DNA of 64,000 bases from Mantamonas sphyraenae STR306 (taxonomy: Eukaryota > Protista > CRuMs): contig JAPMXV010000012.1 in assembly GCA_026936335.1 (NCBI GenBank), forward strand, positions 1 to 64,000. The letters are read 5' to 3'. The translations under genes and the position numbers were made by a program. The notes under the pieces were generated by a model. The model did not search any database and was not told where the DNA came from. It saw nothing but the letters and a program-made list of their open reading frames with translations. Shown piece by piece: positions 844-22,602 of the stretch (within the stretch, counting starts at the first letter, position 1; each line of letters opens with the position of its first letter).

Positions 844-3800
844 ATGGTCCCTCCCATGGCTGCCCAGCCGTTTCCGAACATGCTGCCCGTTTCTGGCGTA
901 CAAAACCCGTACCAGCACCCACAACCACCCATCATCTGGGTCCCTGTCAACACCCACCCCCAGCAGCACCACGCATATGCTCACCAGGGCCAACCATACT
1001 ACGCCTACCCTCCTCCGCCGCCTCCTCAGCCCCGACAAACCGCCCAGATGCATTACGCTCAGCCTCCGTTGCACCCTCCGCCTGCTCAACCCACCACAAA
1101 CCACAACCGCGTCCCCAAACGCATCAGCCCTGCCTTTGTCGGCATCACACGGACCACATCCACCACTACATCGTCGTCGTCCTCCCACCAGGCCACACGG
1201 CAGACTGGAGACAGCGACGACGACGACGCGGACCAGGACACACACATACTTGACACCGGCGACGTGGAGGACCTGATGTTTGTGAACTTCGGCCACCGTG
1301 AACCACGGTCACCCTCCAGCAACTCAGAGTGGATGACCAGCTCATGGATGGAGGCGTACGAAGAAGACGGCGAGGCGAACCACGCAACCCAGCAGCATGT
1401 GGACGACGAGTTGGAAACTCAGGGCGCACTCAGCTTCGCAGACACTGGTGATGCCATGGATGAGGAGTACATGCCGCAAGAAGTCGACAACGATGACACA
1501 GACGGCATGGAGCAGGAGGACATGGACGAATGGCAGCCGAGACACACAAGTGGAGGCCGCACACAACAACGCAGAGGCCACATCGACCGTCGTACTGGTC
1601 CACAAAAGATGAAAGGCAGTGGACAGCGCAGGCTCAGGGTCACGGCTGGCAGCGGCACAGAGACAGGAACGTCGAGCACACGGGCAGGGAGTGCAAAGTA
1701 CGGAGACAACGGCGCACGCAAGAAATCAAGCGTGGACAAAACGAACAAGTTTCCAGATGGTGTTGTGCGCAAAGGGTGGACACCGGGACGCAGTGAAGAG
1801 CGCAGCCACGGCAACAAGAAGGAGCACACGGCACTGCTGAACCACATGCACACTCTGGCCAATGAGCATCCTATCGACAACATCCCCGACCTCATGACCA
1901 TGCAGGCCCGTGTTGTGGTCTGCCATGGCACTACGACCACGCTTGTCCGACAGATTCAGCTCGCTTTGGGCAACATTCCCCTCTCCCAGGGCGACATGGC
2001 CTTCTGTCTCATCCTTCTGGGCCATGATGTGGATCAACAGGCGTGCAGTGATGCCATCCGTGTCGCTGGTCTGGCCATGGGTGTGACAGAGGCTGGGTTG
2101 AAGGTGTGCTGGCTGGAGGACCCACACGACCACGGCGACCCCAACTACGCCCTCCTCCACCTGCTTATGGCAGAGATGGACACTCTTGGCAACAGAAACG
2201 ATCCCACCACCTGGGAGGAGCAGGAGCAGACCCAGCTGTGGCTGCAGAAAGCACGACGCCCTGCTGACAACGACAGCGACCTTCACTGGACACAATGCGA
2301 CTACGACCACCACCTCACCACAACCAAGGTGGGTATGTGGCATCCTGAGTCTGTGCGCACTGGCTGGAGCAAGACCGCAGACGAGCGTGGCAGCTGCACG
2401 GCGCGGGAGTTCCAGACGCTGCTGGCACACATGAAGGCACGCGCAGCCAAGCACCCTCGCCATCAGCACGCACACGAACACCAGGCACTGCGTGAGCTGA
2501 TCAACAACGGCAGTGTGAAGTCCCTGCTGCGACACATCATCTTGGCTCTGGGCAACGTTGGCGTGCCGCCTGTCGACCTGGCCTTCTTTGTCCGCCTCCT
2601 CAGGCCACACCTCACCTACCAGCAGGTTCAAGGTGCCATCAGCGTCACCCTCACCCGCGGGTGCACTTCCCTCTCCCTCAAGATCGCCTGGCTCGACAAC
2701 CCCAAACCCAGCGACGTCACACTGCACACCCTCCTCCACACCCTCATCGACCGCATCACACCCCACATCACCACACGCCCCACCACCGTCGACTCCGTCA
2801 ACGCCCTCGATTTCCCCGAGCTTGTTCTTCCAGAGCCCACCAAGGAGGAATTGATGGCCGTGGAGGATGGACTGCCAGATGGCGTCGTGCGCAGTGGCTG
2901 GACAAAGTGGCGCAAGAGCGAGCGCATGCACAGCAACAAGAAGGAGCACACGGCACTGCTGAACCACATGCACACCCTGGCCAACGAGCATCCCATCGAC
3001 GACATCCCAGACCTCATGACCCTGCAAGCGCGTGTTGTGGTCTGTCATGGCACCCTGTTGACGCTGGTCCGTCAGATTCAGCTCGCTCTGGGCAACATTC
3101 CCCTCTCCCAGGGCGACATGGCCTTCTGCCTCACCCTTCTCGGCCGTGACATGGATCAACAGGCGTGCAGCCTTGCCATCCCTCACGCTGGTCTGGCCAC
3201 GGGTGTGACAAAGGCTGGGTTGAAGGTGTGCTGGCTGGAGGAGCCACACGACCACGGCGACCCCAACTACGCCCTCCGCCACCTCATCATGACAGAAATG
3301 GACACCCTCGGCGACAGGCCCCATCCCACCACCTGGAAGGAGCACAAGCAGACCCAGCTGTGGCTGCACGAGGCACGACGCCCTGCTGACAACGACAGCG
3401 ACCCACACTGGACACAATGCGACTACGACCACCATCTCGCTACCACCGAGGTGGAAAAGTGGCATCCTGAGTCTGTGCGGAGTGGCTGGACCAACGGTCT
3501 CGGCGACGAGCGTGGTAGCTGCACGGCGCGGGAGTTCCAGACGCTGCTGGCACACATGAAGGCACGCGCAGCCAAGCACCCTCGCCATCAGCACGCAAAT
3601 GAGAACCAGGCACTGCGTGAGTTGATCAACAACGGCAACCTGCTGTCCCTTGTGCGACACATCAACCTGGCGCTGGGCAACGTTGGCGTGCCGCCTGTCG
3701 ACCTGGCCTTCTTTGTCCGCCTCCTCAGACCACGACTCACCAGCCTGCAGGTGCAAAGTGCCATCAGCAAATCCCTCACCCGTGGCGTCACCTCACTCTC

Positions 3801-15115: not shown

Positions 15116-15601
15116 ATGTCCACTGCCTCCTCTTCCTCCTCTTCTTCCACCTCGTCACGGCCAGTCGAGGGACTGCTCATTCAGGACATCCTGGACGACT
15201 TTCTCGCTGCCAACACCAAAGATGGCACAGGGCAATATGTAGACGAACTTGTGGAGCGCCTGCAGCCCGAGCAGCCTGTCCATTGCCTTCGGTACAAAAC
15301 CTCAAAGCAGATGGTCACCGCCATCGAAGCCGGCTACGTGCTCGTGACCTTTAGCGAGACCGATGGCGGTACAGAGCTGGGCATTCGAGTGGGGGACCGC
15401 GATGCACGCGTGGCCAACCCGCAGCAGGCCGACTTTGACACAAAGGAAGGCCACGTGCTTCTCACGGGCTACTGCAACCTCAACTTTACGCCCATCTGCG
15501 TGCAAGCCGACATCGATTTGGACACACAGAAGGGCACGGGCTATGTCAATGTCATGCAAGAGGACGCCTACACACAGGCAATGGGCTGGAAAGCGAAATG
15601 A
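15116..15601 (+). CDS. CBF-beta-like protein (resembles the bacterial standalone proteins often annotated 'MbtH domain protein')
   Basis: DELVERL..GYVLVTFSETDGGTELGIRV..ADFD...GHVLLTG...LNF......ADIDLDT.KGTG; intronless. Confidence 0.7.
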   Translation: MSTASSSSSSSTSSRPVEGLLIQDILDDFLAANTKDGTGQYVDELVERLQPEQPVHCLRYKTSKQMVTAIEAGYVLVTFSETDGGTELGIRVGDRDARVANPQQADFDTKEGHVLLTGYCNLNFTPICVQADIDLDTQKGTGYVNVMQEDAYTQAMGWKAK

Positions 15602-15652: not shown

Positions 15653-18302
15653 TTACCAGCCGCTGGAACCGCGCGAGGACGAGCGGCTGCTGCTAGAGCG
15701 GCTGCTGCTGCGCGAGAAGCTGCTGCTAGAGCGGCTGCTGCGGCTGCTGCTGCTGCGCGAGAAGCTGCGGCTGAAGGACTTGCCGATGCTGGAGGCAGCA
15801 CGGCCCAGCGAGGTGCGCGAGGCATACGAGCCAATGCGGCTGGCAGTACGGCCAAGGCTGGTGCGCGAAGCGTACGAGCCAAGGCTGGATGCGGCACGCG
15901 ACAGAGAGCGCGTGAACGACGACGACGAGCGGCTGCTGCTGCTGCGGGAGGTGCTTGCGCGAGAGCTGTACGAGCGGTAGCTGCGGGTCGACGAGTAGGA
16001 CGACGAGCGCGAGCTGCGGGTCGGCGAGTAAGACGACGACGAGCGGCTGCTACGGCTGAACGAGCGCGTGAGGCTGGATGCAGCACGGCCCAGCGAGGTG
16101 CGCGAGGCATACGAGCCAAGGCTGGACGCAGCACGGCCCAGCGAGGTGCGCGAGGCATACGAGCCAAAGCGGCTCACGGAGCGGGTCAGGCTACGGGTCA
16201 GGCTGCCAGTGCGGACCGAGCTGAGGCTTCGGGTCAGGCTCGAGGCGCTGCGGCTGAAGCGGCTGGTCAGGCTCGAGGCGCTGCGGCCAAAGCTTCGGGT
16301 CAGGCTAGAGGCGGTGCGGCCGAAGCTTCGGGTCAGGCTAGAGGCGGTGCGGCCGAAGCTTCGGGTCAGGCTAGATGCGGTGCGGCTGAAGCGGCTGGTC
16401 AGGCTAGAGGCGGTACGGCCGAGACGTGTGCGCGAAGCGTACGAGCCGATGCGGCTGATGCTGCGGGCAGTGAAGCTGTCCAGCGGGTTCTTGATGCGCG
16501 ACTGCAGACCAAACGACTGATCCAGCGAGTTGGCCAGACCACGCACGGTGCTGCGAGAAAAGACGCTGGACACAGTGCGGCCCACACGGGTGCTGCGCAG
16601 AGACGACAGACCGCGGCTGACGGTCGAACCGATGGAACGGCCGATGCTCGAGGTGGCCACGCGCGAGATCACGCTGCGGCCGAGGGTCGTACCTGCGATA
16701 CCACGCACGGCAAGGCCACCCAGCTTGGTCACACGACCAAACGGGTTCACCAGACCGGTGGCACCGGCAATGGCGGCGTTGCGCACGCTTCCGGTCTTCA
16801 GGTACGAACCGGCAGCGGCACCGAGGCTACCACCAATGTAGGCACCAGCGGGACCACCGATGAGACCACCGATCGTACCACCTGCAATACCACCGTAGGT
16901 GGCGGCGTTCTTGGCCACATGGCGGCCGGCGGCACGCAGGCCCGAGGCGGCGTACGAGGCACCGGAACGGACAGCCGAAGCGGCCGAGTTGTAAGCACTG
17001 CTGGCCGTGCGCGAGACCCACGAGCGGAAGCCCTGGTCCATGTCCATGATCTCACCGTCGGCCTCAGCCTTCTCCGAGACGTACGACTTGACGTCGTCCA
17101 GGGCCTTGATGGCCTTGCCGACCTCAGCACCCATGGTCTCCAGCGGGGATGCCTTGACAAACAGGGCACCACGCGCCGTGAACGTGTGCGACAGACCGCG
17201 CACGCCGTTCTTGGCAATCGCACGCCACATCTTGATGGCCTTGTCTGCCTTCTTGATGCGTCCGCCCGCGCGCTTCAGCAGCACACGCATGCCGCTGTTC
17301 TTCGAGTTCTTGTACTCCCTCTTGAGCAGGTCGTAGCGACGGCGCATGCCGTGGCAGACAACCTTCCACTTGCGACGAGCATCCTCGGTCTGTGCTGCCA
17401 TGCGCTCGTACGAGTGCAGACGGGCACGGGGGATGCGCACCAGATGGCGCTCACGAACGATATGACCCCTGCAAGTGTGTGTTTGACGCTGTGTCAGTGT
17501 CCACTCTGGCCTCCTTGCAGAATCCTGCTCCCAAGCGCCGGTCCCAAACGCGGCCTTGGGAGGGTGTTTTTGCCCCAATTTCCTTCCGCCCCGCGCTCGT
17601 TTCCCGTACCCGCGTTGTTTCCGCACGCCACGCCCACTGAGCCAAATGCCCGCACCGTGGGATACTGCCAACACGCGCGGTCGCGAAAGGCAGCACACAG
17701 GTGTGCATCAGACGTTGCAGCAAGTTGGCGTGCGGGCGAGCGGGAAAACACGTTTGGACAAAGCGGTGGCGAGAAAAAAAGGGTCTCCACGCAAATTGCG
17801 TTTCGCAAACTTACAGCACCTTGCGGCGAGCCTTGAGGTCCTGGCTGTCAATCTTGACCAGACGGCCGCGAATGAAGACGCTGTCCTCATCAGAGACGTC
17901 GTCGCTGCTGCTGGAGGCTGCGCTTTCGCTGTCCTCCAGTTCGTCGTTCGAGTCTGCCGAATCGGTGGACTCGTTGGAGGAAACCTCCTGCTGCTGCTCC
18001 TGCTCTTCGTCGCTGGAGCTGCTGTCGCTGCTGGCCAGCAGCTGCTGGGCAACGGCAACCTCGTCCTCGGGCAGAGCGTCGGGGACGGCGGTGGCCTCGT
18101 CAAACAGCTGGGCGGTGCGGTCCGCAGCCTCATCGGCGGCGGTCTGCTCCGGAGTCTGCTCGGTTGCCACCTCGGCCGTGGCCGCCACCTCGGTCACAGC
18201 AGGGGCGGACACGACAGAGCGCTGCTCAGCCACGTTCTCGACTGACACAGCCGACACGGACGCAATGAGCAAGCATGCAATTGCGAAGAGAACGAAACGC
18301 AT
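15653..18302 (-). CDS. Secreted precursor A (767 aa): signal peptide, acidic pro-region, basic domain, Gly-zipper, Ser/Arg repeat tail; intron 17469..17814
   Basis: Signal MRFVLFAIACLLIASVSA; a phase-2 GTAAGT..TGCAG intron joins ORF 17811..18302 to ORF 15653..17698; paralog of precursor B. Confidence 0.85.
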
Positions 18303-18420
18303 GTTCAGAAAAGGGAAAAAGTGGGGATTGTGTGGCGAAGCAGGCGCTCGGCCTGGCGAGGCGATTTTTTTTCTCCTGGCTCATCGTGTGTTGTGCTTTC
18401 TGCTTCACGCCGCTAGCGAA

Positions 18421-21043
18421 TTACCAGCGGCCACCACGGCGGCCGCTGCTGCGTCGGCTGTACGAGCGAGTGCGGCGGGGGCGGTACGAACGCACACGAC
18501 GGGTCGGGCGACGGTACGTACGGCGGGGACGGTAGGTGCGCACACGACGCACACGACGGGTCGGGCGACGGTACGTACGGCGGGGACGGTAGGTGCGCAC
18601 ACGACGCACACGACGGGTCGGGCGACGGTACGTACGGCGGGGACGGTAGGTGCGCACACGACGCACACGACGGGTCGGGCGACGGTACGTGCGACGAGTC
18701 GGGCGGCGGTAGGTGCGCACACGACGCACACGACGGGTCGGGCGACGGTACGTACGGCGGGGACGGTAGGTGCGCACACGACGCACACGGCGGGTCGGGC
18801 GACGGTACGTGCGACGAGTCGGGCGGCGGTAGCGGTACGTGCGCACACGACGCACACGGCGGGTCGGGCGACGGTACGTGCGACGAGTCGGGCGGCGGTA
18901 GCGGTAGGTGCGCACACGACGCACACGGCGGGTCGGGCGACGAGTCACACGACGGCTCGGGCGGCGGTAGCGGTACGTGCGCACACGACGCACACGGCGG
19001 GTCGGGCGACGAGTCACACGACGGCTCGGGCGGCGGTAGCGGTACGTGCGCACACGACGCACACGACGGGTCGGGCGACGAGTCACACGACGGCTTGTGC
19101 GGCGCGACATCCTGCGAGCATAGCGCCTAGCAGTGGCACCGGTACGGCGAGTCGGGCGACGAGTCACACGACGGCTTGTGCGGCGCGACATCCTGCGCGC
19201 ATAGCGCCTGGCAGTGGCGTTCGAACGGCGAGTCGTCGACGTGCGCCTCACAAGGCTGCGGCGCGACATCCTGCGCGCATAGCGCTTGGCGGTCGCGGTC
19301 GACGATCTCCTGTTGGAGTAACGGCTGGCGAAGCGACGCAGGTTCTTGGCCGCACGCACGGTCGTCTTGCCCGCCCAGTTGCCAAAGCGCTTGGACAGAC
19401 GGTCGTAGCCGCTCAGCTTGCTGGCCGTGCTCCATGCATGTCCCTGAGCCTGCTTCACGGCAAACTTGCCTGCAGCGCGAGCAAGCTTGCTCAGGCGCGT
19501 GCGGCTAGAAATGTACTTGCTTGCGCTGCGGTACAGACCAGTGGCCCGGGTCACAGCACGGCGCACAAGAGCAGAGCGAGACGCGTACTTGCCGATCGAG
19601 CTCTTCTGCAACGAGCGCAGAGCACGTCCACCATAGCGATCAATCGTGCCTCGGATACCTCCGTTGGACTCCACAGCACGCACCACGCTCTTCACAGCAG
19701 AGTGGCCCAGCGCACGCGACACAACGCGCGTAATCGCAGCCTTGCCCCACGACGTCTTGGCTGCAATCTTGCCCACGGCGCCCACGCCGCGCAGCACACG
19801 GTCAAACGGGATAGCTCCCACCACGCCTGCAGTCACAGCCCTGGACGCACGCCTCGTGGTCAGGTAATCACCGGCAGCGCTGCCCAGAGCACCTCCAATG
19901 GCTGCTCCTGCGGGGCCAGCCACAAGACCACCGATAGCACCGCCTGCGATGCCACCGATCGTCGATGCGTTCTTGTACGCCACCTTGCCGGCCCAACGAG
20001 CACCACGTGCAGCATAGCTGCCTGCAGTCCTCACTGCGCTCGACGCCGCGTTGTACGCGCTGCTTGCCTTCGACGACACCCAGCTCCTAAAGCCGGCATC
20101 CTCCACCTCGTCAAACTTCCTCGAGCGGTACTGACGCAGAGCAGACAGGCCAGAAATGGCCTCGCCCACCTCGGCGTTCACCTCCTTCAGCGGGTTGTAG
20201 CGGACAAACAGCGACCCGCGCGAGCTCACGCGGTGGCTCAGACCACGCACGCCAGCCTTGGCAAAGCCACGCCACAGACCAATGGCGTTGTTGGCACGCT
20301 GCAGGCGCTTCGACACCAGACGCAGCATGCGGCGGTAAGAAGAGCTGGAGCGTCCGCGTGCGGAGGAAAGTTCCGAATCCAGACCCTTGCGCTCCTTGTG
20401 GAAGATGCCCACCAGATCCTTGTAGCGGCGGCGTGCCTTCTGCATACGGTACGCAACGTGCTCATACGACACCAGGCGCTCCGGCGCAACACGACGCAGA
20501 TGGCGTCGCCTCACGCACGTGCCACTGCAGGCGTGTGTGCACGTGTTAGCCTTTCGGAGTGCACGCAAGCACAAAAAAAGGGCGTTTCGTGAAAAAAAAA
20601 GGGGTTTCCGCCCACGCCGCTCAACCACCCCCTGTCGCATACCGGCAATCCCAAATCGCCCAAACTTACAACAGCTTCCTGCGCACACGCTTCGGCGGGA
20701 TGACGCCAATAAGGCGGGGCTTCACACGGATCGGCATCGAGCGGGCGTCCTCGACATCCTCGTCGCTGCTGCTGCTGCCTTCCTCTGAAGCATCCTCTGC
20801 CTCCACCTCGTCATCGCTGCTGCTGCTGTCGCTCTCCTCGACATCTGCCTCGTCGTTCTCGTTGTCCGAGTTGGACGACGACGAGGCGTTGTCCTGAGCC
20901 TCCTGCACCTCATCATCCGAAGACGACGAGTCAGACGACTGCATGAGCGTGTTCACGACCTCGCTCTCGCTTTCGCTGTCGGCATGCACTGCGGCCACGC
21001 ACGCGACCAGCATCATAGCCACCAAGACCAGGGTCACTCTCAT
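18421..21043 (-). CDS. Secreted precursor B (825 aa): signal peptide, acidic pro-region, basic domain, Gly-zipper, protamine-like Arg repeat tail; intron 20525..20669
   Basis: Signal MRVTLVLVAMMLVACVAAVHA; phase-2 GTAAGT..TGCAG intron at the position equivalent to A; shared GVRGLSH, RG.LFV, AEVG.AI and GFRSWVS motifs. Confidence 0.85.
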
Positions 21044-21132
21044 GGTGGGTAGTTTTTGGGTTTTGGGGGGGTTATTTGTGTGCCTCCACACGCGCGGTGC
21101 AGCCGCAGCCGCCTCCTCTCTCACCTCCTCGC

Positions 21133-22602
21133 TCACCTCCTCGCTCGTTGCACCAACAGCAACCCCACAACCACCACCACCAACTCGGCCACCCACGGCC
21201 CAATTTCCCCTCCCAACCATTCCTCCACCAGCGCTTTCCACTGTCGCCATGCTTCCCGCCCCACAAACCGCACCATCAGCGCCATGATCGCAGGCAACGC
21301 CCACGCCAGCGTCCACACAAGTCCTACTGCCCACGCAGACAACAACACCCCGGCAAAGACCATCGCCGCTTCCCACCCCAGCGCTTGCCACTGTACTTCT
21401 CGCAGCCCTTCCCGCTCACCCACATCTCTCTGGTGAGCCCTCCCGTCCGCCCCACCACGCCCAATCCACATGTCTGCGCCCGCAACTGTGTTTCCTTCCT
21501 CCTGCCTGTCCAACCCCGCCTCTGCATCCACTCCGACTTCCACACGCTCCTCTTCCTCCCCCGGCCCGCCCACACACACCACCTCCACCCGCCCCGCCTC
21601 ACCCACCTCCACGGCCACTTTCAACACCCTATCTTCCTCTTCCTCCCCTCCATGCACGTCCAGCAGCTCCACCACTCCTCCGGCAACCGCATCTGCTGCT
21701 CGTTGCAGCGAACGCGCTCCTTCGCTCTCCACATAATGCTGAGCCACCAGTGCCCGTTCTGCCTTCTCGCCCCAATGCAGCTCCACCCCGTACGCACTCC
21801 GAAGCCGTCTCTGCAACGCGTCCAGCTTTGCTCGCATCAAGGCCACCAGCTCTCCTCTCGTAAACGGCAGAAACACCACTGTCCGGTCCACACGAGCCAC
21901 AAACTCCTTCTTACGGAAGGGATTCCGCCCTTTCGCGAATGTCTGTCCGTCTCCGTACAGTGCCAGCACACGTGCCACCAGGGCCTCGTACCCTGCGCGA
22001 TCCACCTGTCCGCCTGCCTCTGCCACCCACTGGCTAATCTGTGCTGCTCCGAGGTTCGTCGTCATCACAAACACTGCTCCGGAGCAGTTCACCACGCCGT
22101 GTTGCTGGTCCCTCAGATGGCCCTCATCAAACACAGGCAGCATCAAGTCCGGCACCGCGTCCGCGTGTCCCTTTTCCATCTCATCCAGCAGCACCAGACG
22201 CCGTGGCTGCTTCTGTAGAAGCTGTGTCAATCTTCCCCGCTGTCCCGCTTCTCCATATCCCATGGCCGGTCCTACAAGGCTTGCAATAGCGTGCCGCGCT
22301 TTGTAGTTCCCCATGTCGATCGGAAACGGTTCCGCCACGTCGTCCAGACCCACGTCTGTTCGCCACGCTGCCACACGTCGGGCCAGCTCTCCTTTCCCTA
22401 CACCTGATGGGCCCACAAACAGCAATACCAACGGCTTGGATGTGTCCCCCAGACCAAGCTGCCTCGCACGCACTGCGTTTGTCACCACCCGCACCGCATG
22501 TTCCTGGCCCACAAACGTCGACAGAGCAGACGGCAATGCAATGACAACCGGCAGCAACAGTGCAGCCAACAGCACGGCCACCGCCACCGCTCTGCCAACC
22601 AT
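21133..22602 (-). CDS. Single-domain ClpB/Hsp100 NBD2-type AAA+ ATPase with a signal peptide and a hydrophobic C-terminus (torsin-like topology)
   Basis: VGQEHAV, Walker A GPSGVGKG, IDMGNY, SLVGPAMGY pore loop, Walker B LLDEMEK, FDEGHLRD, VFVMTTNLGA, EFVARVD, sensor-2 GARSL. Confidence 0.85.
   Translation of the reverse strand: MVGRAVAVAVLLAALLLPVVIALPSALSTFVGQEHAVRVVTNAVRARQLGLGDTSKPLVLLFVGPSGVGKGELARRVAAWRTDVGLDDVAEPFPIDMGNYKARHAIASLVGPAMGYGEAGQRGRLTQLLQKQPRRLVLLDEMEKGHADAVPDLMLPVFDEGHLRDQQHGVVNCSGAVFVMTTNLGAAQISQWVAEAGGQVDRAGYEALVARVLALYGDGQTFAKGRNPFRKKEFVARVDRTVVFLPFTRGELVALMRAKLDALQRRLRSAYGVELHWGEKAERALVAQHYVESEGARSLQRAADAVAGGVVELLDVHGGEEEEDRVLKVAVEVGEAGRVEVVCVGGPGEEEERVEVGVDAEAGLDRQEEGNTVAGADMWIGRGGADGRAHQRDVGEREGLREVQWQALGWEAAMVFAGVLLSAWAVGLVWTLAWALPAIMALMVRFVGREAWRQWKALVEEWLGGEIGPWVAELVVVVVGLLLVQRARR

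Follow-up and report, generated by a model that had tools for sequence, protein, structure and literature searches.

In a 64 000-nt stretch of the Mantamonas sphyraenae STR306 genome (assembly GCA_026936335.1, contig JAPMXV010000012.1, positions 1 to 64 000; hereafter the window) we find two adjacent genes, A and B (positions 15653-21043), that are real, spliced and expressed. They belong to an orphan family of seven genes (A to G), whose products are, with high confidence, genuine proteins of the secretory pathway. All seven share one plan: a signal peptide, an acidic stretch, an intron, a basic helical region, a glycine-zipper module and a low-complexity tail. Mantamonas, whose cell biology has hardly been studied, is a member of CRuMs, which branch close to the base of Amorphea.

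Gene models of the pair

The initial annotation of this DNA, made from the letters alone, described two paralogs on one strand, 767 and 825 aa long, with a phase-2 intron at a common position. Our reading of exons and introns on the reverse strand gives the same models. The product of gene A has 162 codons, one split codon and 604 codons (767 aa); that of gene B has 124, one split codon and 700 (825 aa). Both introns split a Leu/Phe codon in phase 2 at an identical alignment position. The features of the two genes are as follows.

Gene A
17815..18302 (−), exon 1: 162 codons, net charge −26
~18243-18302 (−), predicted signal peptide, from the start codon onward: hydrophobic core, summed insertion energy about −1.9
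~17835-18242 (−), acidic Ser/Asp/Glu region: part of exon 1
17820-17828 (−), basic RRK: end region of exon 1
17469..17814 (−), intron: 346 nt, phase 2, GTAAGT..CAG
15653..17468 (−), exon 2: 604 codons plus stop
~16928-17467 (−), basic helical bundle: within exon 2
~16793-16912 (−), glycine-zipper hairpin: within exon 2
15656-16792 (−), Ser/Arg tail with Trp as last residue: 33-nt x 6 and other tandem arrays

Gene B
20670..21043 (−), exon 1: 124 codons, net charge −21
~20981-21043 (−), predicted signal peptide, from the start codon onward: hydrophobic core and small-residue cleavage motif
~20693-20980 (−), acidic region: part of exon 1
20675-20683 (−), RRK: end region of exon 1
20525..20669 (−), intron: 145 nt, phase 2, GTAAGT..CAG
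18421..20524 (−), exon 2: 700 codons plus stop
~19990-20523 (−), basic helical bundle: within exon 2
~19855-19974 (−), glycine-zipper hairpin: within exon 2
18424-19854 (−), Arg-rich tail with Trp as last residue: 69-nt x 9.4 and 81-nt x 2.8 tandem arrays

BLASTP shows the exon-2 products of the two genes to be paralogs (E = 1e-38, 37% identical residues in 480 columns), and the acidic first exons can be aligned only loosely. The conserved motifs that the initial annotation had quoted, the glycine zipper (as a hairpin module) and the final Trp are present in both proteins.

Splicing and expression

Four public runs of one study cover the stretch. One of them, X3, has DNA as a guessed label but behaves as RNA. 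In gene B, an X3 contig of 875 nt links position 20524 to 20670; the 145 nt skipped, CT..AC on the forward strand, are exactly the intron. In gene A, X3 contigs have loose ends at 17468 and 17814 that bear letters of the other exon (the end of exon 1 and the start of exon 2). The junctions in both genes thus bear out the earlier claim that the signal and acidic exons are spliced onto the basic exons. Genome searches found no intron-less copy, and the joined exons can therefore not be put down to a retrocopy in the DNA.

The X3 word depth is 1000-3600 in the exons, as against intron values of 120-270 and flank values of 105-250 (105-270 for the two together). These values suggest that A and B are strongly expressed, which is to be taken as an indication only because contig depth is unable to rank genes. 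An X3 contig extends to 21065, giving gene B a 5′ untranslated region of at least 22 nt.

Seven members in the genome

We searched the M. sphyraenae assembly (25 061 354 bases in 78 contigs, ∼60% GC), in agreement with the published FALCON assembly of 25.06 Mb, 78 contigs and 59.19% GC (PMC10492846). Searches and folds were run on the separate exon products. The core of A found two close paralogs, C and D, on contig 54, along with three weaker matches. Exon 1 of B found the same three weaker loci, just upstream of their hairpin matches, and we read them as further genes: E (contig 15), F (contig 57) and G (contig 19). The possibility that these three matches are low-complexity noise was rejected, as E, F and G have the exon layout of the family. 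A profile of the glycine-zipper module hit exactly seven places in the genome, A to G. An intron stands ahead of the basic part in every member and is in phase 2 in all six checked (A to F).

Identity in the helical domain is 50% between B and C, 44% between A and D and 40% between A and B. The nearest relative of B is thus C, and that of A is D; we therefore reject a recent duplication as the origin of the tandem pair. The description of A and B as a tandem pair of paralogs holds as far as adjacency goes; the two are part of a family of seven, and A is not the closest paralog of B in the helical domain.

Charge layout and the acidic/basic boundary

Signal peptides were judged solely on hydrophobic cores and small-residue cleavage motifs, and by these the N-termini make entry into the secretory pathway likely, as first proposed. 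An acidic first part followed by a cationic remainder was also part of the initial description, and the net charges per part agree with it: −26, +17 and +70 for exon 1, helical domain and remainder of A, and −21, +21 and +187 for those of B. The first exons of C and D have net charges of −28 and −1. From GFRSW onward we count 2 acidic residues among 459 aa in A and 5 among 557 aa in B, exactly the numbers given before, and Arg makes up 31% of this part of B.

The further idea, that an acidic propiece masks a cationic mature region, needs correction. In A to C the charge of the acidic part (−21 to −28) is about equal and opposite to that of the helical domain (+17 to +21), which is thus roughly balanced. 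The tails carry a far larger charge (+70 to +187), and stoichiometric masking therefore cannot extend to the mature region as a whole.

The motif RR[KR] followed by [LV]L lies exactly at the acidic/basic boundary in A, B, C and D, and F has RRRRL; in five of the seven members RR[KR] comes immediately ahead of the intron. The RR[KR]xL motif occurs once and not between repeat units. Together, the signal/acidic exon, the phase-2 intron and the RR[KR]xL boundary suggest a general route of pro-protein sorting and processing in Mantamonas. The genome contains candidate convertases: a gene with subtilase and P domains, and a second P-domain gene. The former is of the kexin/furin type:

L008 94-2394, contig 45 (+), kexin/furin-type convertase: subtilase, P domain, predicted membrane span, Gly/Arg-rich stretch, C-terminal SH3 domain

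A membrane span together with an SH3 tail is an unusual build for such an enzyme.

The helical bundle

An AlphaFold2 model was made from a four-sequence alignment of the exon-2 cores. It has long helices at 14-55, 58-92, 106-136 and 145-179. Confidence (pLDDT, predicted local distance difference test) is 77-92 over most of the first 135 residues, ∼60-80 in the last helix and <50 in the hairpin and beyond. The last helix is the GFRSW helix, which in the model directly follows the other bundle helices. Fold alignments span residues 1-182 as one bundle and run through this helix, so the ‘acidic spacer’ ahead of it looks like an inter-helix loop and not like a cleavage site. The initial annotation had listed a GFRSWVS amphipathic helix behind that spacer; as modelled, it is a further long helix of the bundle and does not look like a free amphipathic peptide behind a cleavage site.

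By this model the basic domain is a generic long-helix bundle, with no fold class assigned beyond that. Foldseek with the core model gave no match in PDB at E ≤ 0.001. A wide structural search (VIA) returned generic bundles only, with a best Z of 12.9; by the guidance of the search itself, the background for helical bundles is near Z 13. The top matches were unrelated bundles (HIP1R THATCH, talin rod, designed proteins), and AhlB (Z 9.8) and HblL1 (Z 8.4) were also among the matches. No relative of the helical domain was found in Pfam, in PDB or among 1.84 billion representative proteins, a library that itself lacks Mantamonas. The statement that the family is not a recognised one was thus upheld, and the fold and profile checks (Foldseek, Pfam, PDB and profile search) gave no clear match of the central domain to any characterised family.

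The glycine-zipper hairpin

The hairpin has a repeated small-xxx-small pattern visible in the sequence and is the best-conserved module across all seven members. In three of them (E, F and G) the turn carries CGPGC or CGPPC, a pattern compatible with a disulfide and so with an oxidising compartment other than the cytosol. Membrane insertion was estimated by summing approximate values of a biological hydrophobicity scale over 19-residue windows. The best 19-mers of the hairpin come to about +5.4 to +6.7 kcal/mol, and the signal peptides to −0.7 to −1.9. A hairpin this polar should escape retention by the translocon, so the proteins of A to G are, judging by their residues, probably soluble lumenal cargo in which the hairpin is no co-translational anchor.

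In Pfam, A and B have only sub-threshold matches, to C19orf12 (PF20721) and DUF456, both on the hairpin. PF20721 scores 15.4 bits in A and 19.7 bits in B, below its gathering cut-off of 30 bits. Neither A nor B brought up any of the glycine-zipper families of Pfam (e.g. PF13488, Gly-zipper_Omp), even with the limit relaxed to E ≤ 1. An exhaustive profile search of the 1.84 billion representatives yielded seven weak matches, each of them confined to the hairpin module, with the helical domain left unmatched; the best was a crAss-phage cargo protein, and the others resemble glycine-zipper segments of tape-measure proteins. No self-match was seen in this library, which shows that it lacks Mantamonas, and absence from it is therefore weak evidence that the family is restricted. 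By sequence, PDB gave one tape-measure protein (E = 0.067), and PHROGs gave weak tail or tape-measure matches. In the ESM Atlas the core matched only sub-threshold T7SS_signal/LXG clusters (0.83-0.85) and the helical domain matched none. A word-indexed search of 5.8 billion proteins with residues 1-260 of A exon 2 returned nothing, the candidate list having probably been saturated by glycine-rich words.

The tails

Across the seven members the tails are unrelated in sequence, and in six they are nearly acid-free. They are rich in Ser/Arg in A, Arg/Thr/Tyr/Pro in B, Ser/Tyr/Lys in C, Ser/Thr/Gly in D, RGG in E and Ala/Arg in F; G is the exception, with mixed-charge Lys/Arg/Glu repeats on either side of the module. 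Those of A and B are built of independent DNA tandem arrays. Periodicity also differs: A peaks at the 11/3 helical period, C has a period of 2 and B shows a harmonic of its repeat. Such heterogeneity speaks for charge, and against a specific fold, as the property that the tails share.

Four members (A, B, C and F) finish with Trp, and D finishes with Trp-Gly. The ends in these five of the seven members, Gly/Arg-Trp or Trp-Gly, lie as follows.

15656 (−), C-terminal end of A
18424 (−), C-terminal end of B
L003 3411, C-terminal end of C
L004 844, C-terminal end of D
L012, C-terminal end of F

The terminal Trp, conserved on tails that are unrelated in other respects, may serve as a signal for sorting or processing. 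In member E (contig 15; L005 ∼1970-3321, L011) the RGG-repeat frame shifts to another frame late in the tail, and all three frames are open throughout the repeats. An indel in the assembly, a small intron or a true frameshift could lie behind the switch, and the C-terminus of E is uncertain to that extent.

Surroundings of the gene pair

The stop codon of B and the start codon of A are separated by a spacer of 118 nt (18303-18420). A further spacer of 89 nt (21044-21132) lies between the start codon of B and the stop codon of the gene upstream, which encodes an AAA+ protein of 489 aa (21133-22602, −) with a hydrophobic N-terminus, AAA_2 and ClpB D2-small domains and a torsin-like layout. With spacers this short, untranslated regions and promoters must be tiny or overlapping. 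At 21065-21088, just upstream of the start of B, run X2 differs from the window by three bases and one 1-nt deletion, and run X1 is the same as the window; the X2 differences are probably allelic or strain variation in the 5′ untranslated region or the promoter. On the other side, a 161-aa open reading frame (15116-15598, +) with no Pfam match at E ≤ 0.001 is flanked by a 3-hydroxyacyl-CoA dehydrogenase gene and gene A.

Possible function

We tentatively favour, at less than even chances, the view that the proteins are processed, membrane-active, polyanion-binding effectors against bacterial prey. The signal peptide would bring the chain into the endoplasmic reticulum, where the hairpin, too polar to be held by the translocon, would leave the whole chain as soluble lumenal cargo. 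During transport the acidic, Ser-rich first part would keep the basic helical bundle neutral. A kexin/furin-type convertase would then remove this part by cutting at the conserved RR[KR]xL boundary, and the mature polycation would pass to the cell exterior or the food vacuole. There the acid-free tail could bind the polyanionic envelopes of bacteria, and the glycine-zipper hairpin, possibly once the bundle opens, could insert into the prey membrane and disturb it. Glycine-zipper toxins that depolarise or disturb bacterial membranes are documented (PMC12744356, PMC5380434, PMC10240207), and Mantamonas is a small, marine, gliding bacterivore of CRuMs that is grown with bacteria (PMC10492846, PMC12133344). 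The outside matches of the hairpin (the crAss cargo protein and tape-measure-like segments) are membrane-penetrating parts, which we count in favour of such a role.

Several observations weigh on the other side. The mature proteins would be 600-700 aa long, far above classical antimicrobial peptides, and the acidic part is too weak to neutralise the tails. Fast-evolving tandem-repeat tails of very different chemistry are more typical of structural or adhesive material. Low complexity could account for the phage and bacterial matches of the hairpin, which are weak (E ≥ 2e-6 in 1.84 billion), and the values of the hydrophobicity scale are approximate.

The tails speak for the main rival, an adhesive or coacervate extracellular material: they are long, tandem-repeated, paralog-specific and nearly acid-free in six members, and that of C is rich in Ser/Tyr/Lys with a period-2 alternation. 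Such polycations (with Ser possibly phosphorylated) would stick to negative surfaces or condense with polyanions and so help in adhesion during gliding or in catching prey, and the conserved core would tether or organise the material; Mantamonas does glide on surfaces (PMC10492846). We nevertheless consider this role rather unlikely, given that it leaves the best-conserved part, the glycine-zipper hairpin, without a task, and that neither adhesive-type domains nor evidence related to 3,4-dihydroxyphenylalanine (DOPA) or phosphorylation was found. The conservation of the hairpin in all seven members, with its faint C19orf12 and DUF456 matches, would be accounted for if, once the signal peptide is cleaved, it resided in an endomembrane or the plasma membrane in the manner of C19orf12, both flanks being lumenal or outside, as part of a surface coat or organelle scaffold. 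Matches of 15-20 bits against a Pfam cut-off of 30, a strongly unfavourable sum of insertion energies and highly basic non-cytosolic flanks, contrary to the positive-inside rule, make this improbable.

The charge-segregated pre-pro layout with its conserved boundary motif, and the apparently strong expression, would also suit the matrix of a regulated secretory granule or extrusome. Its acidic and basic parts would co-condense and proteolytic maturation would trigger assembly, as with the trichocyst and mucocyst precursors of ciliates. Yet no similarity to known granule lattice proteins was seen, and no ultrastructure, hence no extrusome, is published for Mantamonas (PMC12133344), and we hold this to be quite improbable. 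Least credible by far is a silaffin-like protein, a biomineral or polyamine template whose layout copies diatom Sil1p. Sil1p does combine a signal sequence with an acidic N-terminal domain and a basic repetitive C-terminal part, and its RRIL/RRNL motifs are removed on maturation (PMC4557024); RR[KR][LV]L at the acidic/basic boundary may be likened to these motifs. However, a search of the genome for the silicon transporter family PF03842 came up empty, Mantamonas is not reported to form mineral structures, the boundary motif occurs once and not between repeat units, and the bundle and hairpin have no silaffin counterpart.

If the antibacterial reading is right, a broader and more doubtful proposal follows. 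A to G may represent a new class of eukaryotic antibacterial effectors invented by a deep-branching bacterivore: large, secreted glycine-zipper membrane permeabilisers with interchangeable polycationic targeting tails that kill prey in or before the food vacuole. Their hairpin would either have arisen by convergence with those of bacterial contact-dependent toxins and phage ejection proteins or have been taken over from them long ago. Membrane activity would make the family a new type of eukaryotic antibacterial protein and a source of modular cationic tails; an adhesive role would make it a new protist glue. Either way, a family of seven polycation genes that is apparently strongly expressed and lineage-restricted offers a handle on how tiny grazers deal with bacteria or surfaces.

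Comparison with known systems

The closest likeness of the hairpin is to bacterial and phage glycine zippers: EsxX/TelE of the type VII secretion system, CdzC/CdzD of Caulobacter, the N-terminal motif of the type VI secretion system protein Tde1, and tape-measure and crAss segments of phages. Like these, the family has a helix-turn-helix hairpin with small-xxx-small repeats and a central Pro. Unlike them, its hairpin is eukaryotic, lies behind a signal peptide and an acidic pro-region, and forms one chain with an orphan basic bundle and huge cationic tails; the family has no secretion-system context, and the matches are weak and establish no homology. The α pore formers of the ClyA/Hbl/AhlB type also combine a bundle of long helices with an adjoining membrane-seeking hairpin, but the Z values of AhlB and HblL1 fall inside the helical-bundle background. 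The C19orf12-like proteins (PF20721) have a similar glycine-zipper hairpin, seen here through sub-threshold profile scores, but C19orf12 is a small, cytosol-facing membrane protein with no signal peptide, acidic region or tail.

In the order of parts, the family resembles the prepro precursors of antimicrobial peptides: a signal peptide, an anionic propiece, a basic boundary motif and a cationic remainder. With this class, which is one of layout and not of homology, it shares a signal peptide followed by an anionic propiece. The differences are that the mature part would be 600-700 aa long with a folded domain and that the propiece balances only a fraction of the charge. The layout of silaffin precursors is likewise present when compared with the description of Sil1p (PMC4557024): signal sequence, acidic N-terminal domain, RRxL-type motif, and a basic, Ser-rich, repetitive C-terminal part. 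The processing motifs of diatom silaffin precursors are RRIL/RRNL and RXL (PMC4557024). The family differs from Sil1p in that the genome has no silicon transporter match and no cleavage motifs flank its repeats, and in its additional helical bundle and glycine zipper. The family itself has no detectable relatives, and its layout joins two known ideas, the prepro cationic precursor and the glycine-zipper hairpin.

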